Positions 8,837 to 58,073 of a DNA stretch of 64,000 bases are shown one piece after another. Position 1 is the first letter of the stretch, and each line of letters opens with the position of its first letter. This DNA is from Haliotis rufescens (lineage: Eukaryota). The position numbers were made by a program, and so were the translations under genes. Location: contig NW_025964361.1 in NCBI RefSeq assembly GCF_023055435.1, forward strand, positions 3,968,001-4,032,000, in the 5' to 3' direction. The notes beneath the pieces were generated by a model. It saw only the letters and a program-made list of their open reading frames with translations, was not told where the DNA came from and did no database searches.

Positions 8837-10218
8837 CTAGTGGTAGTAATAGGGACTGGCTTTGCCGACGAACGACCCAGCAACTCCATGACCAACAAAG
8901 GGTCCACCATGTCCATAAACACCGTGTCCGGCAACTCCGTGTCCGACGAAAGGTCCATGTCCAGCAATGGCGCCAATGTGTCCGTACAAACCCTGTCCAG
9001 CAACGAAGGATCCATGTCCAACGAAAGGTCCGTGTCCTGCAAGACCAGATCCATGTCCAACAACGAATTTGCCAACGCCTTTACCGTAGCCATTGTTGTT
9101 GTAGTTGTAGGGGCTATAGTCGATTCCATAAGCCTTTCCAGCACCAATGCTACCAACGCCTTTACCGGAGCCGTAGCCGTTGTAACCATAGTTGTTGTTG
9201 TATGGGTTGTAGCCATAGCCTGTACCAGCAACGCCAACGTTGCCAACGCCTTTACCGTAATCGTAGCCGTTATAGCCATAGTTATTGTATGGGTTGTAGC
9301 CATAGCCTTTACCAGCAATCTGTCCATTGTTGAAACCTACACCGAAAGTACCAGCTCCTTTGTAAATGTGAGACTCCTGGGCCAGGGCAGAGCCGACCAG
9401 CACGGACAACACAGCGAAGACGACCTAGAAACAAAGAATCAGTTGAATCTGAAATAACTCGGTCATGAAAATACAGCATATTCTTAAAAGTGTTCACATG
9501 ATGTTTGAAATGAAATAACATTTCACCGATGTCCGAAACAAACATGGTCGATGGGTAGATAACTTAAAATAAAATTGCCTTGAATGCAGTTCTTGTGGTT
9601 GTATTTGATTTTTAAAAATCGAACCTGGGCAAATTAATAAATAATTCCCAAAACATAACAATTTAAGAACGCCTAGGTTAGCAATAATTCGAGTCTTTGT
9701 GAGAATCGTGCAATAAAATACAAAGTATAAATAAGAATTCTCATAATTTCGTATCAAGATGTGATCAAAGAGGTATCGGCCACCAACTTCATGACTATTT
9801 TCTCATTGGTATATCTATGAGCTTTTCCAAGTTAATGTCCATTCATAAATCATATAAAGATAAAACACAACATTGTACAGTCTTTTCAGGTATTTAGTTA
9901 CCTCCGTCAATCGCATTTGCATTATCCGAAGTCTTAAATGACAAGTCGTTCTTGGGAAAACTAAAAGCATATCTGTTCATAACAAGTGTCAATGTTTGAT
10001 ATGACATTGGAATGAGAAATAAAGTAAATAAAGATCGACTTAACGAGATTTCAGCGCAGAACTAAAAGTTGGTACATTTGTGACTGTACAATGCATCAGT
10101 CTCATACTTTCCCCAACACTAAAAAACGGTCAGTTACAGGATTAACCAAATTCCCCCCAAATGCTTCAAGTTTCAAAATGTGATGAAAACAACTGCATGT
10201 CGTTCATATTACCTTCAT
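8837..10218 (-). CDS. Gene A: secreted Gly/His/Tyr-rich low-complexity protein, join(10218..10213, 9424..8837), 197 aa, MKVVFAVLSVLVGSALA/QESHIYKG...GKASPYYYH
   Basis: ATGAAG|GTAATA micro coding exon; acceptor TTTGTTTCTAG before 9424 in frame with ORF 8837..9412; hydrophobic signal peptide ending ALA; three Y/N-rich blocks then GHG(P/S/V)x repeats; TATATA at ~10290-10295; AATAAA at 8760-8755. Confidence 0.9.
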
Positions 10219-10288
10219 GATGAACAGACTTGACTAGAAGATACACCAGTGCTTAGATGACAGATACCACCACTATGAGGTCGCCTCC

Positions 10289-10363
10289 ATATATACGTAC
10301 CCTTAGCATGGTCACGTGGTCGCTGCCCACAAGATTATCCCGTTATACGTGCACCACGTGACC
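10289..10363 (-). promoter_or_regulatory. Gene A core promoter: TATA box plus inverted pair of GGTCACGTGGT/ACCACGTGACC E-boxes
   Basis: TATATA 77 nt upstream of ATG; E-box 11-mers at 10310-10320 and 10353-10363 are exact reverse complements; same arrangement and spacing in gene B. Confidence 0.7.
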
Positions 10364-15485: not shown

Positions 15486-16623
15486 CTAGTGGTAGTAATA
15501 GAGACTTGCTTTGCCGACGAATGACCCAGCAACTCCATGACCAACAAAGGGTCCACCGTGTCCATCAACACCGTATCCGACAACGAAAGGTCCATGTCCA
15601 GAAATGGTGCCAACATGTTCGTAAAGGCCCTGTCCAGTAACGAAAGGTCCGTGTCCAGCAACGAAAGGTCCGTGTCCTGCAAGACCAGCTCCATGTCCAA
15701 CAGCAAATTTGCCAACGCCTTTACCGTAGCCGTAGCCGTTGTAACCATAGTTATTGTTGTATGGGTTGTAGCCATTGCCTGTGCCAGCAACACCAACGTT
15801 GCCAACGCCTTTACCGTAACCGTATCCGTTATAGCCATAGTTGTTATATGGTTTGTAGCCATAGCCTCCACTAGCAATACGTCCATTGTTGAAACCTACG
15901 CCGTATGTACCAACTCCGGCGAGCCCTTTACCATAGAGAGGCACCTGGGCCAGGACAGAGCAGACCAGCGCGGATAACACAGTAATGACGACCTGAAAAC
16001 AGAACACTATTTGAATAACACGGTCATGAACATACAGAATATTCTTAACTCTTTGTCATTTGAAATTTGAAATAAAAATACGGGGATAACTATTTCACCG
16101 ATGTCCGAATGAATTCATGATAGATTGACAATATTGCCTTGGATGTAATTCTTATGGTTTTATTTGATTAAAGCATTCGAACGTGGGCATATATCATCAT
16201 TCAGAAAACATAAACATCAACTTTGTGAGAATCAAACAATAAAATATACATAATAAATAGGAATTCTATTAATTTCATATCGGGAAGCGTTCAAAAAGTT
16301 ATAGGCCACGCACTTAGTTTTGAGTATGCTCCTCGTCACTATTTTCTCATTGTTAAGGCCATGTGCCGTTTGAAGTTAATGTCCACCCATACATCACAGA
16401 TAAAGCTCAACCTTTCTTTTTCATTTTACATAATAGGTAATTTCATCAACCACAGTCGATTTGCAATATCCATAGTTGTATGTTGCAAGACGTTCTAAGG
16501 ACGATTGAAAATACATCTGTTCATGAAAAGGATGCCAAGGTTAGACGTGACATTTCAATGAGAAATAAAGTAAATATTTCACCACCAGAAGCTGGCATGG
16601 CTGTGTAGGTAGCTTACCGTCAT
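15486..16623 (-). CDS. Gene B: secreted Gly/His/Tyr-rich protein, join(16623..16618, 15992..15486), 170 aa, MTVVITVLSALVCSVLA/QVPLYGKG...GKASLYYYH
   Basis: ATGACG|GTAAGC exon 1; acceptor TCTGTTTTCAG before 15992; tandem paralog of A including intron, promoter and 3' flank; TATATA 16695-16700; AATAAA 15413-15408. Confidence 0.9.
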
Positions 16624-16693
16624 GATGAACAGACTTGAGAAGACGATACACAAGTGATTAGGTGATTGACGCTACCACTATGGTGTTGCCTGC

Positions 16694-16769
16694 ATATATA
16701 CTTACTTTCAACGGGGTCACGTGGTTGTTACCTACACAGCTAGACCGCTATTGGTGTACCACGTGACCC
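16694..16769 (-). promoter_or_regulatory. Gene B core promoter: TATA plus inverted E-box pair
   Basis: TATATA 16695-16700; GGTCACGTGGT 16715-16725 and ACCACGTGACC 16758-16768, 43-nt offset identical to gene A. Confidence 0.7.
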
Positions 16770-19700
16770 TATCATTTAACGGCTGTATGAAGAGTTGCGT
16801 AAATAACCATAAAATTGATCAATCGAAATTGACAAAACAATTAATTGAATGTAAGCAACACGAGGATACAGAAATAATAAAATAAGAATATGGAACAATG
16901 TTCTTGTTTTACCTTGATAAGATATTGATCTGGTTGTAAAAAAGTTTAATGTATCAATATTATAAATAGATATGTATTTGAGTTATTATCAGCATAACCT
17001 ATCACCATGTATTTATTTCATAAAACATTGTCACTTGACCATCACCAACTTCGGTAGTTAACAATTTTCGTAGAGTATCTACAAATGATAAAACATTTGC
17101 AAGCACAATTTTATCAATTTTTCAAATATTTTAAGACATTTGTTGTTATTTTTTAAACCGAATTTGATGTACGATTGTGGTAACTTTGTTGACTGTTGGA
17201 GAAGAACTTAACAACTACAAGAATTTCAGTAAACGACACACAACATATCTTAGCAAGAAGGAAGTGTCACAAATGAATCAATAACATATCAAAATATGAA
17301 TGCATTGGTGTTATCGGTAATGTTAATTGAATTGAGCCTAATATTATTTTCCCCATTAGGAGAATGGGACCTAACTGACTGGTTTGTTTGTTCATGGTAC
17401 ATTGATTTATGCAATGCAAGTAAAAGAATATTTTGTCTAATTGCAAACTTAGACGATTTTTTTTCTGATTTTATTGGACGTTTTCACAAAGTCAGTGTTT
17501 GTTTATACGTCTGTAGATGTAAGATGCGTTTTCAGCCAACCTAGGTCTGTCACATGACATTGAAGTTTAATCGAAATGGAAATAACACATTTTAAAAAAT
17601 CCCGTACACACAAGAATGAATGCAGTGGTGCTAAAAGTGATGTTGTGAATTTACATTTAATTTTCCACGAGATAAACTGTAACAGTACTGTCTTTGTTTG
17701 TTCAAATAGAAACGAAACTTTATAGAAGTTGTGAAGTACAGTATTCAGCCCTTGCTGAGATGATGTTAAACCTTTGAAAAAATACATATATTTTACTTAA
17801 AACAAATACAGACGTATCTTAAATGCCTTCATTAACGCTGATATAAATTACGTGGATTAGGATCATATAAAAAGTAATTTATATTAATTACCTTGATCAC
17901 AAACTGAAAAATACGTGAGTATTTTACGGCTACATCGATATGTTTAGATACAACTATTTGTGAACCTAAATTGTTTATTTTGTGTTTTTTAAACGCGTAT
18001 GTTAAAGCATGTTGAATATAACAAAGATAAATTCAAAGCTCCAGTGATGATTACAACTGATTTTCACGCAACACCTTGTTTATGATTAACTTAACTCAGG
18101 TTCACCTATTAACTCATTAATCGCCACTGACGCTGGTTTACGCATTCATGCATGCTTCTTGTCAATAGAATGATGGCTACCATAAATAATGAATACAATG
18201 AAGCGACCCTGACCCCTGCAGAGATTAGGGATACAGGGGATGAGGTGGATGCAATCATTATGGCAATCGTATTCACCGACGTACATAAAGAGTTAAATTT
18301 ATCCCCACAGGTGGCTAATGAGGCGTAGCGGCGTGCTTAAATGTTGCACCCGAATCGCAACAATTTAGATTAAACTAATACATTAAATATAAATATTATT
18401 ATTTCAAATATACTATGTGATAATCATTTTTATGAACTAAATTAAATTCTGAGGTGTTTTTGTCATTTCGCTACTTTTATTATGTTGACGATCTTAAGGT
18501 TAATATGCCATTTGTTGACTAGTTGGGTGTCAAGCTTCTTGTATATAAAGAAGGAAGTGAGAGATCACCAGTTTCATCGATACCCTCATCATCAATCGCA
18601 GTGTTACGTGACGTTATATGGACATCCAGAATGAGCGTTTTGATTAACAGCCAGCTGTGTAAATCCGAACTCTAGCTAGCTATAAGTAATCTAGGTAAAC
18701 CAGTGATTGGTATTGTGAGAAACGTTGAGCTACGATGATAACAGTGTCATCGAGCCTGAACACCTGATGAAATATTAAAAAAGTCGAAAATAAATCATTA
18801 AAATAGTTTTCGTACTTTAACCATCGATTTTACAAGATACACGTGCGAATTCTCGTTATATATCTTTAAACAAAGTTCTACTGCTTATGGTTTTAACTTT
18901 TAAAGAAAACGGCGAAACATTAACTACAGGGGACAATATGACGAAACATTTAGTGTTCCAAACATTTAAATAATATAACTCCTCAAAAGGACTATAGCAA
19001 CATACTAATAAGAGGATTTATCAAAAACGTATCACTCACACAACGCATTGCTAATGATTCATTACAATTCTGGGGATAGAGAAGCGAGGTACTCCACGCT
19101 CGTCACGCCAAAGACCCGAGTTCGATTCCCAAGATGGCTACATGAAACCCATTTCTTGTGTCCCCCGCAGTGATATTGCTGGAATATTGCTAATGGCATC
19201 AGACACGGAGGTGGTGTTGCAGGACAGGGAACAATTATGGGACAAGGAGTTGCTCGCTTTGATCTATAACGTCGCTCGACCTTATAATTTTTACTACAGG
19301 ACCATAGAGAATCAGGAAAGGTATAACCGTTCAAAATACACGCCCAATTCGGTGTTCAGAGTTGCGTCCCTTAGGCTTGCCAGGAAGCTATGATCATAGG
19401 TTTGTATAATATTTTCGCCATTATTATGTTTCTTGTTTTGTCTAGGTTTTTACCAAAGGTACACACGTCTAAAACCTGCATCACTTCGGACTTTCAAGTC
19501 TTGTTAAAACCGAAATTATGTTCAAAGTGGCATTTAGCCAAACTCACTCACCCAAAATACATGTCAAGTTTGCTTAATATATTATAGTTTAAAGTATTGA
19601 AGTTGGGATTAAGATGAACTGTAGAACATCATTTTATTCCAGCTGAATGGCTCATGAACGTGCATGTATCTGAAAGCTGACCGTCTACAGTACATTCACT

Positions 19701-19906
19701 GATCAAAACATCCTTGTTGTCATCTTTGTAGATATTTACGAAATACGAGCAAGTAATGTACATTAATATTGGGGCAAGTATGACAACTGGTTTGACAGAA
19801 TCCATTTTCAAAGCAGTACTTCCTTATATAGTGTTATAGAATTTAGCATTATTGTAATGTTTGTAGTGAAATACTCAGATGTCGGTTTATACAGAGTAAA
19901 ATATAC

Positions 19907-20065
19907 TGAGTGAGTGAGTATGATTTTACGCCGCTTTTAGCAAATAGTCCAGCAAAATCACGGCGGGGGACACCCTAAAATGGGCTTCATACATTGTACC
20001 AATGTGGGGAATCGAACCCGGGTCTTCGGCGTGACGAGCGAACGCTTTAACCACTAGGCTACCCA
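19907..20065 (-). mobile_element. SINE family 1 copy
   Basis: Reverse complement of the 25500-25665 consensus; further copies at ~415-575, 12820-12925, 14630-14790, 19095-19200, 23830-23985, 25988-26122, 46810-46960, 50255-50375, 62353-62450. Confidence 0.85.
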
Positions 20066-21112
20066 AGGGCCCCAGTAAAATATACATGATAATGAATATG
20101 TCTTGGCCATTGTGTGTTGTTGCTATGCTTCCAACAGACACATAAAATGTTGTTAATAACATTTTAAAGGAACGACACCTTACATAGCAGTTACGAAAAC
20201 ATACACACACCGATCAACGCATACATACACATAGGAATGTACATTAACGAACGCACACATACACACAATAAACATCAACTTATACGTACGTTTTTGCAGA
20301 TTTCATGTTGACCTCCAGAATACTTTTTATAACTTAGATTTACTCAGTGTTTGCATTATTTTCGCATACCTTTTCAACTACGCATTTGGGATTTGAGGGT
20401 TACTTTTCCAAAAAAGAAAATTTGATGTCACGACATATTGATTTTCTCAATTATTAATAGGATGTCGTCAATTTCAATTTTAACCAACTGTGTTATATCA
20501 CGCAAATCGTGTTCAGTTGAAAAACAGTTTACTCGCACGTTGAAGATGCTGCTGATTTAATAAAGTGTTTTCTTGTCCATGCGTATTTGGGTAAGGCAAG
20601 CGACATAGAATCGAGAGTTGTTTTCTTATGTTTGTGACTCTTTCATAATAATGCTGCTGATGATGATGATAACACTGCTACTATTTACAATAATGATGAT
20701 GATGATGATGATGATGTCATGGCGTGTCAGCTAAATGTGGGAGGTAAGCCCGAAGTGATGCAGGTCTCGGGCATTTACCACTTCGGTGAAACCCACGAGT
20801 TCGGCTATGGTGCTGACAAACCTAGAAACATAATCGGGGCGAACCAGGATTCGAACCAACAATCATAGGTTTCTGGCGTGCCCAAGGGACGCAACTCTGC
20901 ACAGCAAATTGCAGCGCTGTATAATGCCCCCTGTAATACTGAACAATAACAATAAACTGTTGTTACTTAATATATCATATGGTGTTTATTCGAACTCATA
21001 AACAGATGAACACAGTATAAAACACATTCACACACCAGTCTACACATGCATACGACTCTATCTAATGCAAAAAATGTACCGGCATAGCAACACCTTGTGC
21101 AATGAAAGCACG

Positions 21113-22718
21113 TTAATAAACTCCGTGGCCTGCAACTCCATGTCCGACGAAAGGTCCATGTCCAGCAATGAAACCACGATTTCCGTTAATTCCATTCCCC
21201 ACGAAAGGACCATGTCCAGCAACACCATGTCCACCAAAGGAACCAACATGGCCGACGAAAGGTCCATGTCCTACAAGACCAGATCCATGACCGCTGACGA
21301 AGTTACCAGGTGCACCCAATACCTTGCCGTAACCATAGTTGTTGTAGGGGTTGTAGCCGTAACCGTGTCCCTTACCAGCAACGCCGTGTCCAGCAACAAA
21401 AGGACCATTTCCTGCAAAGGAACCAACCCCTGAGAAAGTTCCGTGTCCTACCAGGCCAGCTCCATGTCCAGCGACATTGCCAACGCCTTTCCCGTATCCA
21501 TAGTTGTTGTAAGGGTTGTAACCGTAGCCGTAGCCATGTCCTGTACCAGCATTGCCGTGTCCTGCAACACCGTGACCAACAAGAGAAGGACCATGTCCTG
21601 TGAAGGAGCCAACGTGGCCGACGAAAGGTCCGTTTCCGACAAGACCAGCTCCGTGCCCATAACCATAGTTACTGTTGTATGGGTTGTAGCCATAGCCTTT
21701 ACCAGCAATGCCTCCATTGTTGAAGCCAACACCGAAAGATCCACCTCCAAGGAGTCCTTTACCACGGAGGGGTACCTGGGCCAGGCCAGAGCAGACCAGC
21801 ACGGACAACACAGCGACGACGCACTAAAATTATACAAAACTAAAGATTAAGAATAATTATGTTTACACTTTATGTGTCACATTCTTAAAACTTCAAGAAA
21901 TAATTTCATCTTAATCAGCATTCCTTTTCAGTATGAGCTTGTATTAAATAGTTATAAAAATATAAAAAGTTAATGTTCAAACATAATTTTCCAAATAGTT
22001 CCTGATGCGATATGTTTACATATTTGGCCAGGAAAGAGCGGATCTAGACCAGCACGGACAACACAGCGACGACGACATTTAAATACATTTTGTTTACTGT
22101 AATTGTACGTAAAGAGAAATAAAAAAAGAAAACATTTATATATATCTAGCTTTGTTTTGGGTGTCTTTGTTTGTCTTTATGACTGTTGCAACTCGTGGAT
22201 TGTTCATTAATAAACAAAATTACTTTTAGTAAACTGGAAGAATATATAAAAAAGAATAATTTCTTCATGAAAATTAAAGATATGAAGAAGTCGTTTTTAA
22301 TAACCTGAGTTACAGCTTTTCCATTCTATATGATATATTCAACCTGACTACATACCACCATACACATACTACACGAACATACAGCCAAGGCATCATAAAC
22401 AAACAAACCTAAAACGAACAATCTAGTTAATTAAAAAACCTGTGTTGTGATGTGTATGTGTACCAGATACACATAAAAAACAAGCTTCTGTTATAACGAA
22501 GTAAATCGTATAAACGTAAATGTACGTAATAGTCTCTCTCTCTCTTTTTCAAATTTGGGCCGAGAGAAAAATGTACTTCTCAAGAAAAGTATTCAATGGC
22601 AGAGAAAAGTTCGACTCGCAGCACACACCCATTCATTTCACAATGTCCATTCACAGTTAATGTCTCTGTGATGTTTACTAGGATGAGGCTAACGTGGACA
22701 ATGGCTGCTTACCTTCAT
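21113..22718 (-). CDS. Gene C: secreted Gly/His/Tyr-rich protein, join(22718..22713, 21823..21113), 238 aa, MKCVVAVLSVLVCSGLA/QVPLRGKG...GHGVAGHGVY
   Basis: ATGAAG|GTAAGC exon 1; acceptor ATAATTTTAG before 21823; 16 GHG tripeptides alternating with three YNPY blocks; no Asp/Glu in the mature chain; TATATA 22780-22785; AATAAA 20990-20985. Confidence 0.9.
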
Positions 22719-22778
22719 GACTGGGCGAGTAGGGGCGACAACAGAAGACTGATACCTCTTGCCCTCGTGTACGCCAAC

Positions 22779-22808
22779 ATATATACACCTTCAACATTGT
22801 CACGTGAT
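22779..22808 (-). promoter_or_regulatory. Gene C core promoter: TATA plus GTCACGTGA E-box
   Basis: TATATA 22780-22785, GTCACGTGA 22799-22807; alignable with the A/B promoter. Confidence 0.65.
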
Positions 22809-23179
22809 TGTTACCCACCAAGCGCGTTATGTCCCATGTAACCAGTATTAAACTTGTGATTGTAATTTTATAGTGTTGGCGTTAACGTGATTTTATCTGG
22901 CAATTGTTTTCATAATTGATCTATGAAACATGATTGGTACAAAGGCAACACAACCCGTTCCAAAATCAATTCTCTGCTAGGACAATATATACAATTGTTT
23001 CTACAGAGAACGTTTCAACAACATCTTTAAAGAACTGGAAAATATCAAATCCCAGAAAAAGCTTGCTCGAGTGACACGGTGCTTATTTCGAAAAAATAAG
23101 ATTAATTTTGGTTTAAATAATAACATATTGTGTTTCGTATTTGCTTCCTCATATTTACTGTTATACGGACGTACCACTT

Positions 23180-23680
23180 TTACACACACCCACACCTGCA
23201 CCCAATCTCAACCCACAGCTACACCCACACCCACACCCAAACCCACACCCACATCGAATCTCAACCCACACCCACACCCACACCCACATCGAATCTCAAC
23301 CCACACCCACACCCACACCCACACCCACACCCAATCTCAACACACACATACACCCACATCCAATCTCAACACGCACCCACACCCACACGCACACCCACAC
23401 CCACACCCACACCCAATCTCAACACACACATACACCCACATCCAATCTCAACACGCACCCACACCCACACCAAAACCAACACCAAATCTAAACCAGCACC
23501 CACACCCAAACTCACACCCACACCCACACCCACACCCACACCCACACCCACACCCACACCCACACCCACACGCAATCTCAACCCATACCTACACCCACAC
23601 CCAATCTCAACCAACACCCACACCCACATCCATTTCAACACACGCACACACACGCACACGCGCACGCACAACCACATACA
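23180..23680 (+). repeat. (CACACC)n-based degenerate micro/minisatellite
   Basis: Hexamer runs interspersed with AATCTCAAC; generates spurious PH/PT/TH ORFs. Confidence 0.95.
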
Positions 23681-24949
23681 TCTAACCGTGTCAATGGAGT
23701 TTCGTTGATGTGACAAATAGTCAATATAAAGTATTACTCATAAATGCAAAAAAAATTCAATGTTTGGAAGATGAACTCCAAACTTTGATACAAATTAAAG
23801 TATAAAGATCCGGTATACCCAATAATTTAGAGTGAATGAGTATGGTTTTACGCCGCTCTTAGCAATATTCCAGCAATATCACGGCGGAGTACACCAGAAA
23901 TGGGGGTCAGATATTGTAACCATGTGGAGAATCGAACCCGGGACTTCAGCGTGACGAGCCGACGCTTTAACCGCGAGGCCATCCCCCAGCCTAATGTCGA
24001 AGGGAAAGTAAAATATAATGAAGGTGTTACATTACACCAGAGCGAGTGAATTTGACTTAACGCCGCTTTGAACAGTATTTCAGTGTCACTTTTATGTTGG
24101 AGGAAAGCCCGAAGTGATGCAGATCTTAGACGTTTACCACTTTGGTGAAACACACGAACAAGCGCATGGTGCTGATGAACAAAATCAGGCGAACTTGGGA
24201 CTGGAACCAATGATGTTAGATTTCTGGCACATCAGCACAAAAAGAGGGAAAGTGTTGAATTCAATAGACGAGGATCCATCTTAATGTTTTTAACAAAGTT
24301 CATACAGTTTGTCAGATATTAGATTGTAGGCTTTAAGGTTTTATAAAATGAAATACTATTCGGAAGTACCTCTGCTACTTTTAAAACAAATATGGGATGT
24401 CACTCGTTTGTTCAAACGTCCATTATTTTACAGGAATAGGGAGCTGGTTGTCAATTACGTACATATGAAATTGAGGGAACAATTTTATTTATTTTCCGTT
24501 GTGATCATTAACACATTTCTCGTGCAGCTCGGAAGGGCGACTGAAAAATAACCTGACACATGAATTGTAATTAAAGATGCAGATTCCAATTTCTTTTGCC
24601 AAATAATTTCCCTTTTATCACACTGATATATAGTATTACATGAAGGTTCTGCTTTAAAAAGACACCAATCCGAAGAATTGCAGTTTTGTTGTTACTGTGG
24701 CCTGTTTTTTTCATTTGATGGTGGATATTTTGCCATCGATCTAATTTTCGCTTAAACACTTGCCCCTTCTATTTTGTTTGAAGTGGTACATGTACATGTC
24801 TGTGTATGTTTCTCTACATTCTCTATATCCGTCTAACGGTTTAAATGTACGATTTACCTTGTGAAAAAGGTTTTTATCCAAACAATATGTGCAGTTCAAT
24901 ATTGACTGTTGCAGACGCTTGTCATTCATGTGGGCAGCGGGCGATATAC

Positions 24950-25015
24950 CACCCCCGCCCCCCCCCCCCCCCCCCCCACACACCCCCCCCCCCCCCCCCC
25001 ACCCCCTTACCCCCT
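24950..25015 (+). repeat. Poly-C tracts (also poly-G 52376-52403 and poly-C/(CA)n 53585-53640)
   Basis: Direct reading. Confidence 0.9.
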
Positions 25016-25310
25016 CATAACTTTCAATCTTTAATCAAATTGAAGAGGTGCGTATCATGATCAATTGAAAGACGAAGAGGCTATCGCTCCAGCGATCTAA
25101 GACACCGACGAACATTAATATGTGTTTATGTCCTCCCAAGAGGCTAACGAGGCGAAGCGTTGGTATTAACTATAGAATCAAAACCACAATCCTTTCTGAA
25201 TTCTAAATAAATTAACATATATACGTTCTTACGTTTTCATTGTAATGGTGATGATATCCATTAGAACCATTTGGGGTTATTATCAGCTAAGCAGTCTCCT
25301 ACGTATGTAC

Positions 25311-25347
25311 TCATGTGACCCTACATGTAACCTGTACATGTATATAA
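25311..25347 (+). promoter_or_regulatory. Gene D core promoter: TCATGTGAC (M-box-type E-box) plus TATATAA
   Basis: TCATGTGAC 25311-25319, TATATAA 25341-25347, 84 nt before ATG. Confidence 0.6.
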
Positions 25348-25424
25348 GTAGGCATATCTCAGATGGAAACGTCACTCGCCTTGACGTCACCTCTCCAGTC
25401 AGCTTTTGTTCATCAGACAAGATC

Positions 25425-39827: not shown

Positions 39828-40096
39828 TACACCATAAAAATGGCTACGTATGTAGTTGGGGTAGATATGTTGAATGCCCGGCCAGTATGACCTTTGAGTC
39901 ACTACAGTTTCAGTCATAAAATGCGTAAAACAGTATTTGAGTGAAAGAAAACACTATAAGTGAGTGAAACAAAAGACCTCAGTACAGGCACACCCAGTCC
40001 CCCATCCCTGCATGTACCAATACTCATACCTGCCACATCCTCAACCACTTACTCACACAATCATCTGACAACATGTTCGCCAACCCTCGTATCACA

Positions 40097-40131
40097 ACGC
40101 ATGCACGCATGCACGCATGCACGCATGCACG

Positions 40132-40181
<50 letters not shown>
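40097..40181 (+). repeat. (GCAC/GCAT)n plus (CA)n compound microsatellite
   Basis: Direct reading. Confidence 0.95.
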
Positions 40182-40182
<1 letters not shown>

Positions 40183-41214: not shown

Positions 41215-41400
41215 GGTTCGGTGGCTGGGTTAGATCGCCAACTTTGTGTTCTGGCGATTGGGTGCCTCACTCACAGTGTGGGTTCAAATCCCGGACGGGA
41301 CTCAACCCAAGAAAGTACGAGAATCTGTACTTTACTCAGAAAGTGTTATCCCAATTATAACATTTGTTGTCAAGAAAACACAATAAATGTATATTCGGCT
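41215..41400 (+). mobile_element. Degenerate tRNA-derived SINE
   Basis: GGTGGCTGGGTTAG...GGGTTCAAATCCCGG Pol III box-like motifs without a full cloverleaf. Confidence 0.45.
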
Positions 41401-43572
41401 TTGGATGGGTAATGATATCACAGACATATACGGATATTGATGATGACTTGGAGGAGCTTCGTAACGCACGTCTTCTCAATTCAGGGATTGTTAAATCCAA
41501 ATATGTGTGTGCGCGTGCGTGCGTGCGTGCGTGCGTGCGTAAATGTGGGCCTGTTGGATGTTACATAAAACATTCATCTTGAGAGGGATGGTAGTTCGAG
41601 TTGGATTAGCATGTTAACTATATGATCTTCTTTAGGCAGAGAATGCCGCGCATGAATGTATTGATGAAATTCCTAGGTACATGGGGCCTTTTCGTCCCCA
41701 GGAATACCCACAGTGGAGACTTCAATGGGGATAGGGTGTACACAATGTGCTACCTGGTAGATTGTGTGTCATCAGACCGGTCTTTGACTGATTGTGGCGT
41801 AAAACACACTTATTCATTTACTTATATCGGAAATTGAATGTTCATCTTAATTGTTATTGTTGAACATGTAATATATTTTTAAAGAAATATAACAGTGACA
41901 TAATAACTACACTTTATGTGAGCGCGAGTAGCTTTTTTGGAATGAGATGAATAAGTCTTAAAAAGTTGTAAGCTTCTTCACAACCGTGTAACTATGAATT
42001 GACTTTATTGGGTAATCAAAAAAGAGATAGGACCTAAAATAGCCAAATTTCATACGATTTCACTTGTCCATCATCTTGGATGCAAGGCGAAAACATTTCA
42101 GCGCGTTTGAAGCCACTGAGAATGCCCCCTGCAGAGTTGGACGAAGTGTGTTATCAAACCTCACAGCATTGTTTTTTTGACTGACTGTAGCGTCAAAACA
42201 AACTCATTCATTTACTTGAACTGAATGTTCATCTTAATTGTTATGGATAGTCACGGAGCCATGATCCAGAGTACAGGGAGTTATTAGATAGAAATAAACT
42301 AAGTAATAATAGGATTACCAGAAAAACGGGGTTTTACACACAAGCCAATAAACTTCGCTCATTAACACCAGAGTAAGTCAGTACAAGATTGAAAACTGCC
42401 CCATAATTATGTATGACATGCTTGTCGGGTATTGCTACATATATATGTGAAAACAAAGCAAAACTGATGAAAGTTAACAATAAACGTCGTGTATACGTGT
42501 TATATCGTCACTGCAAAAATAATGATTGTTTGTCTTTAGTATTTACATTCAAATACGTTATATCTGTATTAGCGATATTGTCTTTGTTCCACCGGTGAGT
42601 CATCGTTAGTATAATTGTATTTCTGAAGACATCACGATACAGTTTTTACGATGCAACACGTCTGCACTAGCGCTTGATAACAGCCTTGTGTTTGGGTGTT
42701 TCAGTGGTTTAAATCGCTGCTCTTGATATTGTTGATTAAACTTTGATACTATGAACAATATAATGTTATGTGAGAGGTTGACTTTAGAACGGTAACATAC
42801 TAATAGTGTATAGGATGACATAAACAGAACAATGAGAAGTTCGTCCAGATTAGTGTATAGGCAACATTTAATAATTAAAATAATTACATTCAACAACTCC
42901 CCTTTTAAGTCAATTTTCCTGACTTATAAGTAAATACAAGAACAATCGGCCGGAATACAATGTATAGTTCTTGTCCACTTCCATATGACTATATAGCATA
43001 CAATAAGCTATCGGGTCCCGTTTAGATCGGTTTGGGTGGCAGCCTAGATAGCCATAGAATAGTTTCATCTTGGAATCTCCCATATCACTGGGAATCCTCT
43101 TCAATTTAAATGGAGTTACTCGTTACGATTCCGAACCTTCACGTGACTGTGTTTATGAACCATTGTCAAATAGTGGTGACATTAAATCTAGGAAACAATA
43201 CGCGAAATCGCGCATGCACAGAACGGAAAATTTGGTCAAGGCATTAAGTAATCCGCATGCGCAGAACGATTGATTTCAGTACTTCCGCTAAGCGCTTCGA
43301 GTGCAGCGTCAAACGCGGGCCTGTAATCTAACACGTGGGAACTGACCAATGAAATCTGAGAAGTAGAAATACCGGTAGACGCTGTTGCTTGATTGACAAT
43401 GTCAATCAAGAAAGGGAGGAGCTTAACGCTATCGTTCTCTCCCAGTAAATTCCGATGTCAAATAACGACGTTATTTGGACGGAAAAACGATGGTTTGAAA
43501 ACGTCCAAATAACGTCGTTTTTCCGTCCAATGACCATATACGGAAAAAAACGACGTTTTCGTGTTTGCAGTG

Positions 43573-45733
43573 TTATGCAAGTAGAGATTTAATATTACCC
43601 ATCTGTATACCTTTTATTTTGTTATTATTTCTTATCATTATTGCTAAGATTTCGGCACAAAGAATAGCGATATATGGTGATATCGGATCCCTCTGGCGAC
43701 AACCCCTTTAAACCTTAAAAAAATTATTAGCGTATCTATTTACCAAAACACTTGATTCAATATTTTTGAAAAAGACTTTTTCCCAATGTTGAATACTTGG
43801 TCCAAAATTTAAAAAAAGTTAGTACATTTCTTTCCACAGAATCAAATGTTGTTGGTTTTTTTTAAATCAATTAATAACAATAAACCTGGTATTTGGTAAG
43901 ATTAGATATAGTCCATCACATCATAAATCATTCTTGTAACCTCTCCTAAATATCTACCAGCAACAAAACCTTTTTGATCCTCTTGAATAATTAAAGGCCT
44001 AGGCAAAACATGTTTATTCTGTTTGCAATTGACGTTGCAGCTAACTTATAAGATGTGTTAAGAAGGGAGATGGGGCGCCAATTTCCTAAAAATATTTTTG
44101 GTTTATTTTCTTTTGGGATACATGTTATCAATCCTTCTTTTGGGCCTACTGATAGAGATCCATTTTTATAAGCATATTTTAGAGCATTTATTAAATATCT
44201 ATGAAGATCCACCCAAAACAATCTTATAAATTCTGCTGAAAACCATTCTTGGCCCGGGCTTTTATTATTTTTCATTTTTTCCTATGCTTTAAGTACCTCA
44301 TCATAAGTCAATTCTCCCTCAAGAGAAAAGGCTAAATCATCATCGAGTCTTGGCACACGGGTATCAGAAAATAGGTTATCTAAATCAATCTGTTTGCTAT
44401 CTTCAGTTTTATACAATTTCTACTAATAGTCTCTGACTTCTTGAATTAGTTCATCTTGTTTGTATAATTGTGTCCCATCTCAGTTTTCAAGTAATGATAT
44501 GGATTTGTTTAAACAGTTTCTATATTCTAGTGGCAGAAAATATTTTGGTCATCAAATGTAAATACTCTCACTTTAAGATGCATTGTCTTCATATTGATCT
44601 GGAGTATCATTAATTGCTTTTTTAAACTATTGTAACAAAGTGTTTATCTTTCAAAAGTGAGTTAATAAATTTTCAAAAGCCTTTTCCCCTTTGTGAGTGA
44701 GTGAGTGAGTGAGTGAGTGAGTGAGTGAGTTGGGTTTAACGCCGGGTTTAACAGTATTCCAGTTATATCGCGGCGTGTAAGCTTAATGTGGGAGGAAAGC
44801 CCGAATTGATGCATGTCCTAGACGTTTGCCACCTCGGTGAAACCCACGAGCACGGGTATGGTACTGACAAACCTAGAAACATAATTGGGGCGAACCGGTA
44901 TTCGAACCCACAATCATAGGTTTCTTGCGTGCCCAAGGGACGCCACTCTGCACAGCGAATCGCGGCGCCTCAGACGACTGGGCCACCCAGTGTCCCCCTT
45001 TCCCCTTTGTATATCTGAAAGTGAAACAGTAACAGATATAATAGAGTGGTCAGAATTCATACTGGGTATCATATCGCTGCCTTCAACTTACTGTAGCACA
45101 TTGTGTGAGACTGAAAAATAACCCAAATGAGCTTTCTTTATTGTTGTGGGTTGTAGCCAGGTGTATCTTCTTGCAGATGGATATAATTCCCGCCATGGGT
45201 CTATAGGATCTAAACTATCAATTGTCTCCAAAGTTTTTGGTTAATATGTTTATAATGACAAGTGTCTATATCTTATCAATTATTAAATTCCAATGACCAC
45301 ATGGAATGATTCTTTCTCCTGTTAATTCTACTGCGAGTTCCTTTATTTCTTAAATAAATTCTGGTTTGTCAGAATTTGTTCCATATAAGTTAATTATGGT
45401 ATATATTTTATCATCAATACTTACATCTAATGCCACAAACTTACCTTAATATTTATCTATAATTGAATGCATTACTTTGAATTCAAAATTGTTATTTAAT
45501 AAAATAGCAGTAACTATTGCTTTGCTTTTAAAAGGACAAATATAACATTGTTTATAACCCCATTGCGGCTTAATTTGGCTTGATCAACTGTGAAATGTAC
45601 ATCTTGTAGACAGTAAATCTGGGCTTTTTTTATTTTACAAAAAATAAATACTTGTTTCCTTTTAAAAGTATTATTTAAGCCTCTACAATTGAGTGATAAT
45701 ATCTTAAATTTCCCCTTTTTTGTATTTTGTCAT
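43573..45733 (-). pseudogene. Degenerate L1/Tx1-like LINE ORF2, 5' part (AP endonuclease to RT)
   Basis: Minus-strand translations FKILSLNCRGLNN, IYCLQDVH, KSPG...NWRPISLLNTSYKL, GCRQRDPISPY, ...KSLLA*; frameshifts, stops and a SINE insertion at ~44694-45000. Confidence 0.85.
44694..44992 (-). mobile_element. tRNA-derived SINE family 3 (long A-box to B-box spacer), inserted in the L1 relic
   Basis: Minus strand GGGTGGCCCAGTCGTCTGAGGCGC...GGGTTCGAATACCGG, (ACTC)n tail; other copies ~20725-20915, 24045-24230, 58325-58545(+), 60315-60590(+). Confidence 0.82.
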
Positions 45734-47040: not shown

Positions 47041-48139
47041 TTAGTGACCAATGCCGTGCCCAAAGAAGGACCCCTGTCCTCCAAAGAGACCGGCAAAGCC
47101 ATGACCACCAATAAGACCACGCCCTCCAAAACCTCCAAAAAGACTATGTCCTCCTAGCCCCCCGAAAGCTCCGTGTCCAGCTACCCCATGTCCGCCAAGA
47201 ATTGACCCAGACCCTCCTAAGCCATGTCCACCGACGAAGGGACCAGACTCTCCGAAACCCTGTCTGCCGAAGATTGAGCCAGCCCCTCCGAATCCATGTC
47301 CGCCGACGAAGGGACCAGTGTGACCAAAGCCATGACCACCGACGAAGGCACCAGACGCTCCGAGACCCTGTCTGCCGAAGATTGAGCCAGCCCCTCCGAA
47401 ACCATGTCCGCCGACGAAGGGACCAGCATGACCAACTCCATGTCCAAAACCACGTCCGCCCATAAAGGGACCGGCATTTCCAAATCCATGTCCACCAACG
47501 AAGGAACCAGCATGGCCAACACCGTTTCCAAAGCCATGGCCAGCGAAAGGCCCGTGGCCATTGCCGTTGCCGTAGTTGTTGTAGCCTTTGTAGCTGTAGG
47601 TATAGCGGCCGTGACCAGAACCGAGGCCTCTTCCGAAACCGAAACCGTTTCCTTGGAAACCGCCTCCAAGGAGACCATGACCATTCAGAGGAAAGCCAGC
47701 ATGAGCACATGCGCAAAGAGCGGCGAGCAAAACGGCAACGATCTGAATCAAAATAGAAGATCACTTCAAAGGTTTCATGTTTTATTCTATTGATGATTCT
47801 AATAGCAGATAAATTCAATAAGAAAGAATTGTATTGTTTCAATTGAATCAACCCATATAAGTAAAAAAATCAAATTTTGAAGATGTTATAAGATATGTGA
47901 TGAAAGGTGTACGGATTTATCAGAATTGAATTGACTTGGATAAGGACATCGAAATTGAAAGCATAGTTTAGGCCGCGTTCAGAAATATTCATGCAATACT
48001 GATACAACACCAAGAGTTTTACACAATATACCACTTCTGGGACTAAAAAACACTTAACACTGTGCAGACCATCGCCTACAAGCCTAGAAGAATGGCCCAT
48101 GAAACAATAGACAACCAAATTCAGATATCTTACCTTCAT
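47041..48139 (-). CDS. Gene E: secreted Gly/His/Phe-rich protein, join(48139..48134, 47742..47041), 235 aa, MKIVAVLLAALCACAHA/GFPLNGHG...GHGIGH
   Basis: ATGAAG|GTAAGA; acceptor TTTTGATTCAG before 47742; GPFVGGHGFG repeats; TATATAA 48226-48220; AATAAA 47014-47009. Confidence 0.9.
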
Positions 48140-51033: not shown

Positions 51034-52063
51034 ATGAAGGTACAGTATTTGCATTTGGGTAGTCTAATTTCCGAGATAAATGCGCTTCACAATTGTGGAA
51101 ATGGACCTCTTCGAACTTTCTGCTTAGACCATATACTCATGTTCAAATGTCCGAAAACCGCCTCATGAAAACCTCCACAATCCTTCATATTGACACATTT
51201 TATCCTTACCAATGCATTAACTGTTTCTGTTATAAGTCCCAGACATGCAATCGTTGAAATGAACAAATTTTAGTTCTCATTCACATGGACACATCTAATA
51301 ACTTTTCTAAAACATGATAATTCTGAAAGTTTAATTGTACAGATCATGTGGGCCAAAACGAACGGCGTTAAACCCAACTCACTCACTGATTATCTCCATT
51401 TGAATGAAGAAATAATACTATTTCACCCTTGGGCTTTAAATACTTCCTTAAATAACAAGTGTATAATATGATAAAAGAGACACTTTGTTTTTGTTGCAGT
51501 CAGTTGCAGCATTGCTCGCTGTATTTTGCGCATGTGCACATGCTGGATTTCCTCTGACTGGAAACGGTCTCCTTGGGGTTGGTTTCCGTGGTAACAGGGG
51601 CCTAGGAGGCCTCGGTAGTAATGGTTACGGCTACTACCCTAACAGCTACAACGGCTACAACAACTACGGCTACAGCAATGGTCATGGACCTTTCGCTGGA
51701 CATGGTTTTGGGCAGGGCGTTGGACATGCTGGTTCCTTTGTCGGCGGACAAAGCTTTGGGGGGATCGGTTCCTTCGTCGGCGGACATGGCTTAGGAGTTG
51801 CTGGTCCCTTCGTCGGCGGACATGGAGTAGGCGGACATGGGGCTTTCAGTGGCCATGGAGTAGGCGGACTTGGAGGTTTTGGAGGACGTGGTCTTGTTGG
51901 CGGACATGAAATAGGCGGACATGGAGCTTTCAGTGGATATGGAGGTTTTGGAGGTCGTGGTCTTGGTGGCGGACATGGTTTCGCTGGTCATGGTCTTAAT
52001 GGTGGTAATGGCCTTGTCGGCGGACAGGGCCTCTTCGCTGGACATGGCGTTGGACATTATTAA
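51034..52063 (+). CDS. Gene F: secreted Gly/His/Phe-rich protein, join(51034..51039, 51500..52063), 189 aa, MKSVAALLAVFCACAHA/GFPLTGNG...GHGVGHY
   Basis: TATATA 50951-50956; ATGAAG|GTACAG; acceptor TTTTTGTTGCAG before 51500 in frame with ORF 51485..52063; AATAAA 52131-52136; paralog of E, head-to-head. Confidence 0.9.
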
Positions 52064-53597: not shown

Positions 53598-53645
<48 letters not shown>

Positions 53646-54400: not shown

Positions 54401-55020
54401 TTAGTAACGCTCAAAAGAGGACCTCCGCCCAGCAATATGACTTCGATTTCCAAAGAGAACATGACCAACGAAACTGTGTCCGCCAATGAGTCCATGTCTA
54501 ATAATTCCATGTCCGCCAACGAAGGGCCCTGTCCCACTGAAGCCGTGTCCGCCAACGAAGGGCCCTGTCCCACTGAAGCCGTGTCCGCCAACGAAGGGCC
54601 CTGTCCCACTGAAGCCGTGTCCGCCAACGAAGGGCCCTGTCCCACTGAAGCCGTGTCCGCTAACGAAGGGTCCTGTCCCACTGAAGCCGTGTCCGCCAAC
54701 GAAGGGTCCTGTCCCACTGAAGCCGTGTCCGCCAACAAAGGGCCCTGTCCCACTGAAGCCGTGTCCGCTAACGAAGGGTCCTGTCCCACTGAAGCCGTGT
54801 CCGCCAACGAAGGGTCCTGTCCCACTGAAGCCGTGTCCGCCAACGAAGGGTCCTGTCCCACTGAAGCCGTGTCCGCTAACAAAGGGACCAGCATGACCAG
54901 CACCGTGTCCAAAACGATGTCAAACCAAAGGTCCATGACCATTGCTGTAATCGTAGTTGTTGTAGCTGTAAGGGTAGTAGCCGAAACCAGAACCGTGACC
55001 GTTGCCAAAGGAGAGTGTCA
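54401..55020 (-). pseudogene. Gene G (pseudogene) of the E/F subfamily with ten tandem GHGFSGTGPFV(G/S) repeats
   Basis: Minus frame reads ...GNGHGSGFGYYPYSYNNYDYSNGHGPLV*HRFGHGAGHAGPFVS(GHGFSGTGPFV[G/S])x10 GHGII...ERY*; in-frame TGA at 54922-54920 where paralogs have GGA/GGC; signal-peptide part absent, a SINE starts at ~55025; AATAAA 54348-54343. Confidence 0.8.
54511..54886 (-). repeat. 36-bp coding tandem repeat, 10 full copies plus a partial
   Basis: GTCCGCCAACGAAGGG(C/T)CCTGTCCCACTGAAGCCGT on plus strand; encodes GHGFSGTGPFVG on minus. Confidence 0.95.
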
Positions 55021-55024
55021 AGAA

Positions 55025-55215
55025 ACCCATGCTTGTTATAACAGGAGTTATCGGGTGGTCAGGTTCGCTGACTTGGTAGATCACGATGCATGTCATGGTG
55101 TCCCAGTTACGAAGATCGATGCTTATTCTTTGATTGTCTGGTCCAGGCTGATAATTTATAGACCGCCATCATATAGCTGGAATATTACTTAGTGAGGCAT
55201 TAAGAAACAGAACAA
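55025..55215 (+). mobile_element. SINE-like family 2 copy abutting pseudogene G
   Basis: CATGCTTGT...CGGGTGGTCAGGTTCGCTGACTTGG...GACCGCCATCATATAGCTGGAATATT. Confidence 0.8.
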
Positions 55216-57297
55216 ACTTGCTGATTAAAGAGGACACACGCCGCTTGTAATTAAATGGAATGATTACAAAAGATAATTGAAAGTCAGTAACATTGCAATC
55301 ATAGCAAATATCTATATAATAGAACCTAACATAGTTTCTTTTACCTTCGTGCATCTTCGATCACCCAGTGTATTATATCTCCATTCTAGTATAATGAATA
55401 TGAAGATACATGAATTATACACCGGATCAACGAGGGTGGACATCGTGATTCATGTTTTCATGTAATCACCTAACTACGTCTTGCACTTTTGTAAAAGGTT
55501 ACGTGCATCGCTGGAGCTGTTTTGTGACTACAGAAAAAAGATATATGATCTCTGACATTATGATTTTCTGATCAATCCGAACTCGGCCGTTGTTTGAGAT
55601 TGAGCTCTGCTGCCAACTATAAGTGAATAAAACATGTTCAATACCAACGAAATGTCAGATTGTCATAGATGTACATCGAAGAATTAGTTATTCAGACAGT
55701 TCGCTTTTGCTTACGGCAGAAAAGGAATGTGTTTGCGCAACAATATTTTAATCGACGATGTCAGTTCATTGCAGTCTGTCTACAATCCGCCTTAGCATCA
55801 GTATGACGATATCATTCTACTAAAATTCGGTATAATAACTTCACAAATCGTGTCCTTCAGAACAAAAAGAACACTGCGAGACTAAAAACGTTCATGAGAG
55901 AACGTGTCTTGTTTATAAATCTTCAAGTATGAATAGAAGATGAATATCATTTTGTACTGATGTGGAATTCTGGCTCTACGTCAAAAGAACATGTATCTCG
56001 TGGAAAATAACGTGTACATCCTAATAAATGAAAACTCAATGAACTAACGTCTGATCAAGATCGAGTGAACACATGAGCTTGCTATTTGCAAATACAAAGT
56101 AATGCTGTCAGTAAACACTTTAACTTAAAAATAATTTACTACACTTATCATGGTTCTCTTTAACCGTATGAATACAATACATGAGCTGATTGCCTCATAA
56201 CAAACAAAATAACTTCTTCTTCTTCTGTTTCTTCATAATGTACGTACCTGGTTCGTAACTAAAGCGTAGGGCTAAACGATGTACTGTTGCCTTATTAAAA
56301 GATAACTGAGATCATCTCAGTTCAAATGTGTCTCTGTTCACCCAGCAGGGAATGGGTACCCGATATGTGAGGTGGGTGTAATTATAAAAACCTTCTAGCG
56401 CCCGTTGGCAGCTTGGGTTGTATTCTCCCCAGGGAGTTGAAAATGATAACTGGAATGGAAAAGGACCCACTGGTCGGGGACACATATAACCGCATTTGCA
56501 TATATAATACTACCTGGGTAAACGTGGTATATAAATGTATATAATAATGATATTTTTTATAATATTAATAATAATAATAATAATGACAATAATCTGTTGA
56601 CAATGAAAATCACTAGTTCTCATGAAAGGGACATAAAAGAATTTACAGATTGTTTTGCACACAACGAGTACCTCGCCAGACAGACCAGGGTACCTTAACC
56701 TCGTCCTTTTAAAGCGTAACAGTATCTAAAAGAACCCACCTCAAATATTTTCTCCATTTAAACTGCTGTACATCTCAAATAAGGAAAGAAAATAATCGGT
56801 ATTTGAGCATGACCTATGGAAGGTAAAACACATTGCAACCCATAAGCCGAAATGAATATCAGAACAATGTATATCTATGGGGATCAATCGACAACCCACA
56901 GAAACACTCGACTTCAATCTTCAAAGAAAGGACTTATGAATTGCTTCTAAGAAATATAGCCAATGATGACATGATCACAGTCACGTTTGACTTTCAGTTT
57001 ATGTCATTCGAAATCAACAGCTTCACACGGTTAAAGTTTCACACAGAGTATAGTCAGTGTATGCATCGCTCGTCAGATGGGTCAGAGGGCAGTCATGAAT
57101 CAGAATTATGTAATCAAGGATAGGATCAAATTTTACGACAACCAATCATTACCATATTCATTAGGCCTGACAGTGAGATGTCCTTATGTATATGTGATTG
57201 GACCAACTGTATTTAGGAGATGCACTGACCTTGGCTTCCTTACCGGAGTCTTTCAGATCAGACTGGTACCATCCTTGCAGGGCACCCTCTTACAATC

Positions 57298-58073
57298 ATG
57301 AAGGTAATACCATGATGGAAATAAATCACTGGTTTCACATCATTTGAATTCAGTAGTATGACGACATATATTCGTAAGTGTCAATTTTATGTGGGAAAGG
57401 TTCAACGAGAAATTGATGTAATTGACAGACAAAAACGATTCAACGTTAAAGTTTGATACAGAAGTATATGGTACTAAAGGATGAATGTTTATATATGTAC
57501 CAGTAACCGTCAACATTTTGGTATTTTTCGTACATCATATTATGATGAACATTACCGTTTTACAACTGTGTGATATATTGTAATTCATGTATGTATAAGA
57601 CGCCCGGTAACCTGTTCTGGTCGTAGGCGTCGACTAAATTGGATCGGATGATCGAACTCTGTGGCCTTGTCATCGGACACTCACTCATTCACTCACTCAC
57701 ACACCGTTATTCATTCCAGGTCACGCTCATTGTCTGCGCCGTGGTTTGTTCCTCTACCCTCGCTGTGGGCCCAGGGTACCTCGGCCTTGTCTTCAATGGA
57801 GGACTTGGCCTCACCAGAAGACATGGCTTCAACATGGGCCTTGGTCTCAACAGATTCGGTGTGGGCGGGGTTGGCAATGGTTTTCCTGGCAATGGTTGCT
57901 TTGGCTATCATAATGTTTATGGCAAACGCAAAGGCTACAATTACAACGGATACAACGGTCTGAATGGACATGGTCTCCTTGGAAACGGTCATGGTCATAG
58001 CAACTGTGGCTACAATGGCTTCAATAGCCTTCTTGGTTTCGGATTTGGAAAATTCGGAGGTGTTTACCCTTAG
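57298..58073 (+). CDS. Gene H: divergent secreted Gly/Asn-rich family member, join(57298..57303, 57720..58073), 119 aa, MKVTLIVCAVVCSSTLA/VGPGYLG...GKFGGVYP
   Basis: ATGAAG|GTAATA; acceptor TCATTCCAG before 57720 in frame with ORF 57639..58073; signal peptide; GYNYNGYNG and GHG motifs; AATAAA 58157-58162; only a weak TATA (TATTTA 57210-57215). Confidence 0.82.

Follow-up and report, generated by a model that had tools for sequence, protein, structure and literature searches.

A stretch of 64,000 nucleotides (nt) of the Haliotis rufescens genome (contig NW_025964361.1, positions 3,968,001 to 4,032,000; hereafter the window) carries part of a tandem array of genes for predicted secreted proteins that are rich in Gly-His-Gly (GHG) repeats. 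We regard it as very likely that the family, as a class, provides secreted structural material, because its members appear to be secreted, disordered, cationic, repeat-built, under selection, tandemly amplified and probably expressed in a sample-restricted manner. The products are probably the building blocks of a hardened organic extracellular material, and they stem from a tandemly amplified family that is, as far as seen, specific to Haliotis. As for the site of this material, we favour the unmineralised teeth of the rhipidoglossan radula and/or the jaws, since the teeth of the keyhole limpet Megathura fill with Gly/His/Pro-rich protein; this assignment, which is made by analogy, is put forward tentatively, as a possibility that falls somewhat short of being probable.

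Positions below are window coordinates unless said otherwise. A six-frame scan of the window for Gly-rich or GHG-bearing open frames recovered exactly eight loci, g1 to g8, and these correspond, place by place, to the seven intact genes and one pseudogene (g7) of the original prediction. The exon structure that had been described as common to the cluster was found in all seven intact genes. Exon 1 consists of the 5' untranslated region (UTR), the ATG and one further codon (ATGAAG; ATGACG in g2), directly followed by a GTAAG-type donor. A single phase-0 GT..AG intron of 391-1169 nt, with its acceptor AG behind a pyrimidine tract, separates it from exon 2, which holds the remaining coding sequence including the completion of the signal peptide. 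The joined reading gives Met-Lys and a hydrophobic core of 15-16 residues, ending in A-x-A|Q, A-H-A|G or T-L-A|V (bar, cleavage site), and by the -3/-1 rule, on which alone signal peptides were judged, the products of the intact genes are predicted to start with a cleavable signal peptide, as had been claimed for the whole cluster. An AATAAA/ATTAAA polyadenylation signal is found 27-130 nt past the stop codon in all seven, and a TATA box lies 67-87 nt ahead of the ATG in six of them, the exception being g8.

g1 (8837-10218, reverse strand; exon 1 ATGAAG at 10218-10213, exon 2 at 9424-8837) encodes a precursor of 197 amino acids and a mature chain of 180, in which Tyr/Asn/Gly blocks are followed by a GHG block and the C-terminus reads ...ASPYYYH. 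It is the nearest paralogue (82%) of g2 (15486-16623, reverse strand; exon 1 ATGACG, Met-Thr, at 16623-16618, exon 2 at 15992-15486; precursor of 170 amino acids). In g3 (21113-22718, reverse strand; ATG at 22718, exon 2 at 21823-21113; precursor of 238 amino acids), GHG blocks alternate with GYGYNPYNNYGYG blocks, and 16 GHG are present. g4 (25425-27331, forward strand; ATG at 25425, exon 2 at 26600-27331; precursor of 245 amino acids) is 95% identical to g3, and the inverted duplication shared by the two genes spans only ~1.09 kb (26429-27502 versus 22006-20949), leaving exon 1 and the promoter outside the duplicated part.

A Phe-rich subfamily comprises g5 (47041-48139, reverse strand; ATG at 48139, exon 2 at 47742-47041; precursor of 235 amino acids), with 42% Gly, 12% Phe, 9% His and repeat units of 36 nt and 108 nt, and g6 (51034-52063, forward strand; ATG at 51034, exon 2 at 51500-52063; precursor of 189 amino acids), which is 74% identical to g5. 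The pseudogene g7 (54404-54989, reverse strand) belongs to the same subfamily, is 5'-truncated, and carries an in-frame TGA at 54920-54922 and 10.5 near-perfect 36-nt repeats at 54510-54886. Since its likeness to g6 begins ~120 nt into exon 2, g7 lacks a promoter, exon 1 and, at variance with the original claim, a signal peptide. g8 (57298-58073, forward strand; ATG at 57298, exon 2 at 57720-58073; precursor of 119 amino acids) is rich in Gly, Asn, Phe and Tyr and has only two GHG. It showed no significant sequence match to the other members, a genome-wide six-frame search with g8 having matched g8 only; it is assigned to the family by position, exon structure and composition only, and is possibly a distant member.

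In the seven intact genes of the window, the mature chains contain 30-42% Gly, 5-9% His, 2-13% Tyr, 4-12% Phe and 4-14% Asn, have no Cys (2% in g8), and have calculated isoelectric points of 9.2-10.6. Asp and Glu together make up 0-2%, in agreement with the near-absence of acidic residues noted previously. Adding the 11 intact loci found upstream of the window (described below) extends Gly to 49% and Asp+Glu to 3%, and lowers the isoelectric point to 9.1, with His at 5-10% across the cluster. Each window gene encodes 6-16 GHG (g8: two), compared with 0.5-3.4 when its residues are shuffled 1000 times; across the cluster, the count is 6-33 per chain versus 0.7-8.2, and the observed number exceeds the maximum among the shuffles in every member but g8. 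The description of the mature chains as low-complexity sequences built from GHG pentapeptides holds, except that the GHG count of g8 stays within the range of the shuffles and that GHGVY, one of the units listed, is rare. Among ~90 GHGxx units in the window, GHGPF occurs 14 times, GHGVA 11 times and GHGFS 10 times, but GHGVY only twice, and the whole cluster has 46 GHGVA, 33 GHGPF and seven GHGxY. Tyr is instead gathered in separate Tyr/Asn/Gly/Lys blocks (GYGYNPYNNYGYGK type), or largely replaced by Phe in g5-g7. The chains terminate in Tyr (g3, g4 and g6), His (g1, g2 and g5) or Pro (g8).

No Pfam domain was found in any of the eight window products, and AlphaFold2, run on a 12-sequence alignment, returned a mean predicted local distance difference test score (pLDDT) of 39.6 and no secondary structure; the earlier statement that no globular domain is recognisable therefore stands. 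Aromatic and His residues are spaced a median of 3-5 positions apart in a Gly-rich spacer, and the net charge was calculated (with the His pKa set to 6.5) as +12 to +39 at pH 5 but only +3 to +8 at pH 8.1. Cationic, Gly/His-rich, secreted products of a multigenic and fast-evolving family could also be read as antimicrobial or immune polypeptides released from haemocytes or epithelia. The mature chains, however, span 102-368 residues, far exceeding typical Gly-rich antimicrobial peptides, have no dibasic processing sites, and contain 3-7% Lys+Arg that lie mostly in GYGK contexts, and their regular block-repeat architecture is typical of structural proteins. We regard an antimicrobial role as very improbable.

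The ratio of nonsynonymous to synonymous substitution rates (dN/dS, Nei-Gojobori) was 0.19-0.59 in ten paralogue pairs, so that the reading frame used here is under purifying selection. Transcription was assessed with probable RNA contigs from four runs of three studies, coded as to sample and species, which were mapped on 20900-26899. Contigs of 580-680 nt cover exon 2 and the 3'UTR of g3 (21072-21704) at ~97% identity, which indicates an origin in close relatives or in alleles that have diverged. Probable RNA contigs likewise cover the beginning of g4 exon 2, the contigs of g3 and g4 cross-mapping. In the mapped segment, the intron showed zero or trace contig depth and unique intergenic DNA none, and elsewhere only dispersed repeats were covered. 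Summed contig depth was ~30-fold apart between two samples of one study, and other runs of the same studies contained almost no family words, which suggests that expression is restricted to some samples, albeit contig depth is a poor measure of expression. The predicted splicing is supported by (i) the sequence signals and (ii) the MK- starts of the RefSeq homologues, and not by reads. Overall, the data support the view that the family genes are real, selected and transcribed. The possibility that they are not real genes was rejected on the grounds of dN/dS below 1, conserved splice, TATA and polyadenylation signals, and exon-only contig coverage; long open reading frames (ORFs) in the other frames or on the opposite strand are by-products of the repeats.

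The apparent restriction to some samples would also fit a developmental stage, and the family may contribute to another secreted material, such as a pedal or larval adhesive or mucus, the matrix of the larval operculum or protoconch, or an epithelial cuticle. Judged from composition, the Tyr/Asn/Gly/Lys blocks resemble adhesives based on 3,4-dihydroxyphenylalanine, and basic disordered chains would suit adhesives delivered as coacervates. On the other hand, known limpet adhesive proteins are large multidomain proteins unlike the members of the family, a larval structure of short duration would hardly call for as many as twenty genes, and positive evidence for any of these materials was not found. 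Taken together, a material of this kind seems improbable to us.

In the promoter of g1 (10290-10360, reverse strand), counted from the ATG, a TATA lies at -77 and is preceded by two CACGTG E-boxes, one at -100 and the other at -142. This arrangement, with TCACGTGAC-type E-boxes, recurs in g2 (16695-16765) and in the loci u6-u10 and u12 upstream of the window, and one E-box is found in the promoter of g3 (22785-22810). In all of these, the TATA and E-box motifs are invariant although the flanking bases have diverged. CACGTG is the core bound by basic helix-loop-helix zipper factors such as MITF/TFE and USF. The promoters of g4, g5, g6 and g8 are of the TATA type without E-boxes (g8 without a clear TATA). 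Because E-box promoters are limited to the members named above, two or more regulatory groups probably exist within the family, rather than a single kit. The idea of co-regulation, raised in the original prediction, fits the several members with the same conserved promoter, but probably does not extend to g4-g6 and g8.

The cluster is larger than the eight genes of the window. Six-frame searches of the 1.33-Gb assembly with g3, g5 and g8 as queries located relatives of g3 and g5 only at 3.804-4.026 Mb of NW_025964361.1, where ~20 loci of the family stand in tandem within a single cluster of 222 kb, which extends 164 kb past the window on its upstream side; the eight genes of the window represent the distal third of this array. 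Twelve more loci lie upstream (contig positions 3804327-3885523). Eleven are intact, each with its own ATGAAG|GT exon 1, and comprise one frame of 398 codons, three of 360-388 codons and seven of 215-244 codons; the twelfth is a fragment. The 398-codon frame encodes a mature chain of 360 residues consisting almost entirely of 12-residue GGHGL(A/G)G(H/Q)GG(F/I/L)V repeats (Gly 49%, His 9%), and the three members of 360-388 codons end in ...GHYY. By sequence, g5-g7 join the family via the upstream locus u2 and g2.

Homologues were sought with exon-2 translations as queries in three protein searches, namely a word-indexed search (g3), an exhaustive phmmer search against 1.84 billion cluster representatives (g1) and a profile search. 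These matched only proteins of H. asinina (five), H. rufescens (one) and H. rubra (one), besides one algal low-complexity match, and yielded no homologue from cephalopods, polychaetes or other annelids, or bivalves including Pinctada. The family is lineage-specific in this respect, as had been proposed, and the algal match aside, the matches are confined to Haliotis proteins bearing automatic names, with none to a characterised family. E values ranged from 7e-23 to 3e-13 for g3 against five Haliotis proteins and reached 4e-61 (75% identity) for g1 and 7e-66 for the profile. The family proteins, which include XP_046362886.1, XP_067660487.1, XP_067660473.1 and XP_046561801.1, are similar along the chain (g8 excepted), and the Haliotis homologues begin with MK(A/V/F)V..., the same start as the joined window models. 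The H. asinina proteins are either of the g1 type (65-74% identity) or of the type of the long upstream members (45-51%), and since H. asinina possesses orthologous proteins of both types, at least two subtypes are older than the split of these Haliotis species. We infer synteny in H. asinina solely from the position of all matches on one 102-Mb contig.

The mature part (192 residues) of the H. rufescens protein XP_046362886.1, named 'shematrin-like protein 2', is 100% identical to u10, which lies 94 kb upstream of the window and is the only one of the 12 upstream loci found in the searched public protein sets; none of the window's own products was among the matches in the word-indexed protein database. 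XP_046561801.1 of H. rubra (638 amino acids, 'glycine-rich cell wall structural protein-like') contains two full members, both of which begin with a separate MKVVIAALSVLVCSA signal peptide, and as judged from this arrangement it represents two tandem genes fused by annotation read-through. The automatic names do not agree with one another (shematrin-like, scale keratin-like, chorion class A protein L11-like, pupal cuticle protein-like and glycine-rich cell wall protein-like). A literature search by automatic names, topic and short family motifs found no description of the family in searchable papers. It is in this sense undescribed, as the original prediction supposed, albeit at least seven homologues are already present in RefSeq under automatic names. 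We conclude that this is a new family within a known kind, secreted Gly-rich structural proteins, and that it is uncharacterised and, as far as seen, specific to Haliotis. Weak look-alikes in the ESM Atlas (score 0.84 or less) were arthropod Gly/Tyr cuticle proteins, which we take as a lead only.

Among known systems, the squid-beak histidine-rich proteins (HBPs; DgHBP-1/2/3 and the HBpeps derived from them) resemble the family in being secreted, disordered, rich in Gly, His and aromatic residues and poor in acidic ones, with G-H-G-X-hydrophobic pentapeptides mixed with hydrophobic Gly linkers. The GHGLY repeats of the squid-beak proteins undergo pH-induced coacervation via His-Tyr contacts, and charge loss drives both coacervation and chitin infiltration (PMC10766971); for the Haliotis family, a comparable loss of charge upon His deprotonation is predicted. 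The two nevertheless differ in that homology is undetectable, GHGLY and GHGxY are rare in the family while GHGVA and GHGPF dominate, Tyr stands in separate Tyr/Asn/Gly blocks or gives way to Phe (g5-g7), and the host is a gastropod. The parallel with squid-beak proteins drawn in the original prediction is therefore one of composition only. The spacing of aromatic and His residues corresponds to the sticker-and-spacer layout behind the pH-induced coacervation of HBP repeats (PMC10766971). The Nereis jaw proteins Nvjp-1 and Nai11527, which form a hard non-crystalline feeding tool, are likewise paralogous members of a multigene set with a signal peptide, ~29-36% Gly and His (PMC13120676), but their His content is 16% or more versus 5-10% here, the Haliotis chains are without poly-His tracts, and no homology was detected.

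A third comparison concerns the shematrins of Pinctada and shell silk-like proteins, and bears on a close rival to a site in the radula or jaws, according to which the family comprises mantle-edge shell proteins that form a tyrosinase-tanned framework of the uncalcified periostracum or of the outer prismatic organic sheaths, functionally like shematrins and Gly/Tyr-rich periostracal proteins. The sole annotated H. rufescens member has received a shematrin name automatically, and the proteins are Gly/Tyr-rich, predicted to be secreted and without acidic residues. Shematrins have a conserved C-terminal motif ending in Tyr (PMC2034539), and Tyr ends are found in g3, g4 and g6 but not in g1, g2, g5 and g8. 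Mantle secretomes typically contain fast-evolving, lineage-specific secreted repeat proteins (PMC5995198). The SLSP definition asks for a signal peptide, no transmembrane domain and at least 25% Gly in an 80-residue window (SilkSlider, PMC4944945), and the whole mature chains of the family contain 30-49% Gly behind a signal peptide predicted by the -3/-1 rule. Despite this fit, a SilkSlider screen of a small H. asinina transcriptome returned only two proteins (PMC4944945), both of which are unrelated to the Haliotis GHG family. Unlike shell-layer shematrins, the family was also not found in the calcified-shell proteome of an abalone, as four conserved family motifs did not occur anywhere in the 28 files (6.2 million characters) that supplement the deep proteome of H. 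laevigata nacre and prismatic layers; both abalone shell proteome studies stripped the periostracum with hypochlorite before extraction (PMC2989941), so that this silence still allows a periostracal site. The family further differs from shematrins in the lack of detectable homology with any bivalve protein, in its His-rich GHG repeats and Asn/Tyr blocks, and in the absence of a basic C-terminal tail. His at 5-10% is not known as a trait of shematrins. On balance, a mantle-edge role is rather unlikely in our estimation. The family works like, rather than belongs to, the squid HBPs, Nvjp-1 or the shematrins.

The radular teeth and jaws are favoured on the grounds of what is known of vetigastropod teeth. 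During maturation, the unmineralised teeth of Megathura crenulata, a vetigastropod with the same radula type, increase more than 20-fold in amino-acid content, and the bulk protein, whose components were not named, consists of 81% Gly, 10.3% His and 5.7% Pro (PMC4658332). The His:Pro ratio of these teeth (1.8:1) is close to that of the family (~1.3-2:1). A tooth stiffness of ~16 GPa has been put down to proteins bridged by Mg and Ca (PMC12117348). Every inorganic element is below 2% in vetigastropod teeth including those of H. tuberculata, the radula of which was the largest among 24 species (PMC9079087).

In the mechanism that we propose, protonated His would give each chain a high positive charge during storage or secretion at low pH. 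At the pH of seawater, His would lose its charge, and the closely spaced aromatic and His stickers in the Gly spacer may cause the chains to condense. The condensate would fill a chitin scaffold, where cross-links through Tyr, His and Lys, or else bridging cations, might hold it in place. Different grades of material may result from the paralogue types (Tyr/Asn-block plus GHG-block, alternating multiblock, Phe-rich and long GGHG-repeat), and the continuous renewal of teeth would account for an amplified gene family. It is attractive to speculate further that the cluster is the source of the Gly/His proteins filling mineral-free vetigastropod teeth or jaws, that gastropods arrived independently at the squid-beak strategy by way of His-switched condensation into chitin, and that the paralogue types set a stiffness gradient from base to cusp; this fuller scenario we consider doubtful.

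Several observations weigh against placing the family in the radula or jaws. Gly is far higher in the Megathura teeth, which are known from amino-acid analysis alone, and these teeth contain hardly any Val, Ala, Phe, Tyr or Asn. That analysis leaves ~2% beyond Gly, His and Pro, while the family chains contain 40-50% Val, Ala, Phe, Tyr, Asn and Leu, and the family therefore cannot explain it alone. The His content lies below that of the Nereis jaw proteins (16% in Nai11527), the motif held responsible for HBP coacervation, GHGxY, is rare, and Pfam identified no chitin-binding domain in the eight window products. Moreover, the radula type is common to all vetigastropods, whereas phmmer and profile searches found homologues only in Haliotis, a discrepancy that could be explained by fast divergence together with the small number of annotated vetigastropod genomes. 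Finally, no contig crosses the junction of exons 1 and 2, and the RNA samples are coded without the tissue being named.

The window also contains a 14.2-kb insertion between g4 and g5 (29415-43576), which has terminal inverted repeats of 63 nt at its two ends (29415-29477 and 43514-43576) that are 98% complementary. It carries a reverse-transcriptase ORF of 617 codons (35991-37844, reverse strand; RVT_1, E 1.5e-36), (CA)n-type simple repeats and an assembly gap of 183 N (39645-39827). The gap is intergenic, falls in no gene model, and is separated from g4 by 12.3 kb and from g5 by 7.2 kb; because one 63-nt inverted repeat lies on each side, the assembly join across it is supported. A (CACACC)n-based compound microsatellite of ~490 nt is located between g3 and g4 (23185-23676), and a 23-nt tandem repeat of 11.9 copies just past g4 (27858-28129). 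Dispersed short repeats at 23700-24300, 25500-25700 and 25900-26300, and also near 19100-20060, reach a summed contig depth of at least 10^5 in each of the four probable RNA runs, and look like abundant elements of the short interspersed nuclear element (SINE) kind. An ARAGORN scan of the window found no transfer RNA or transfer RNA-like gene.

The array falls into two halves with 91 kb between them (contig 3885523-3976840), in which no family member occurs and which are filled with satellite-like tandem arrays and transposase/reverse-transcriptase fragments. Just beyond the end of the window are two paralogous low-complexity frames of 871 and 801 codons (contig 4032787-4035399 and 4044631-4047033, both on the reverse strand), which are rich in Lys, Asn, Gln, Asp, Ala, Gly and His and have a signal-like hydrophobic start after an AG acceptor; Pfam gave no domain for the 871-codon frame. 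A scan for telling neighbours through the 91 kb and 30 kb downstream found only repeats, transposase/reverse-transcriptase fragments and these two other low-complexity, putatively secreted genes. Genes for secreted repeat proteins seem to accumulate in this neighbourhood.

Vetigastropod teeth are reported to reach ~16 GPa with almost no mineral (PMC12117348), and searchable papers offer no protein sequence for that material. Concrete candidates for it are now available from a farmed species whose genome has been sequenced, in the form of ~20 GHG-repeat proteins that are short and easy to express. Since most members are missing from the searched public protein sets, with one H. rufescens model returned and the H. 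rubra model representing two fused genes, expression atlases built on the current annotation will miss these members. If the true site is the periostracum, the cluster would mark the first description of a His-rich framework family in a shell layer of a gastropod. The natural variants in the array, Tyr-block, Phe-rich and long GGHG, may be used to study how sticker identity and block order relate to pH-triggered condensation and hardening.

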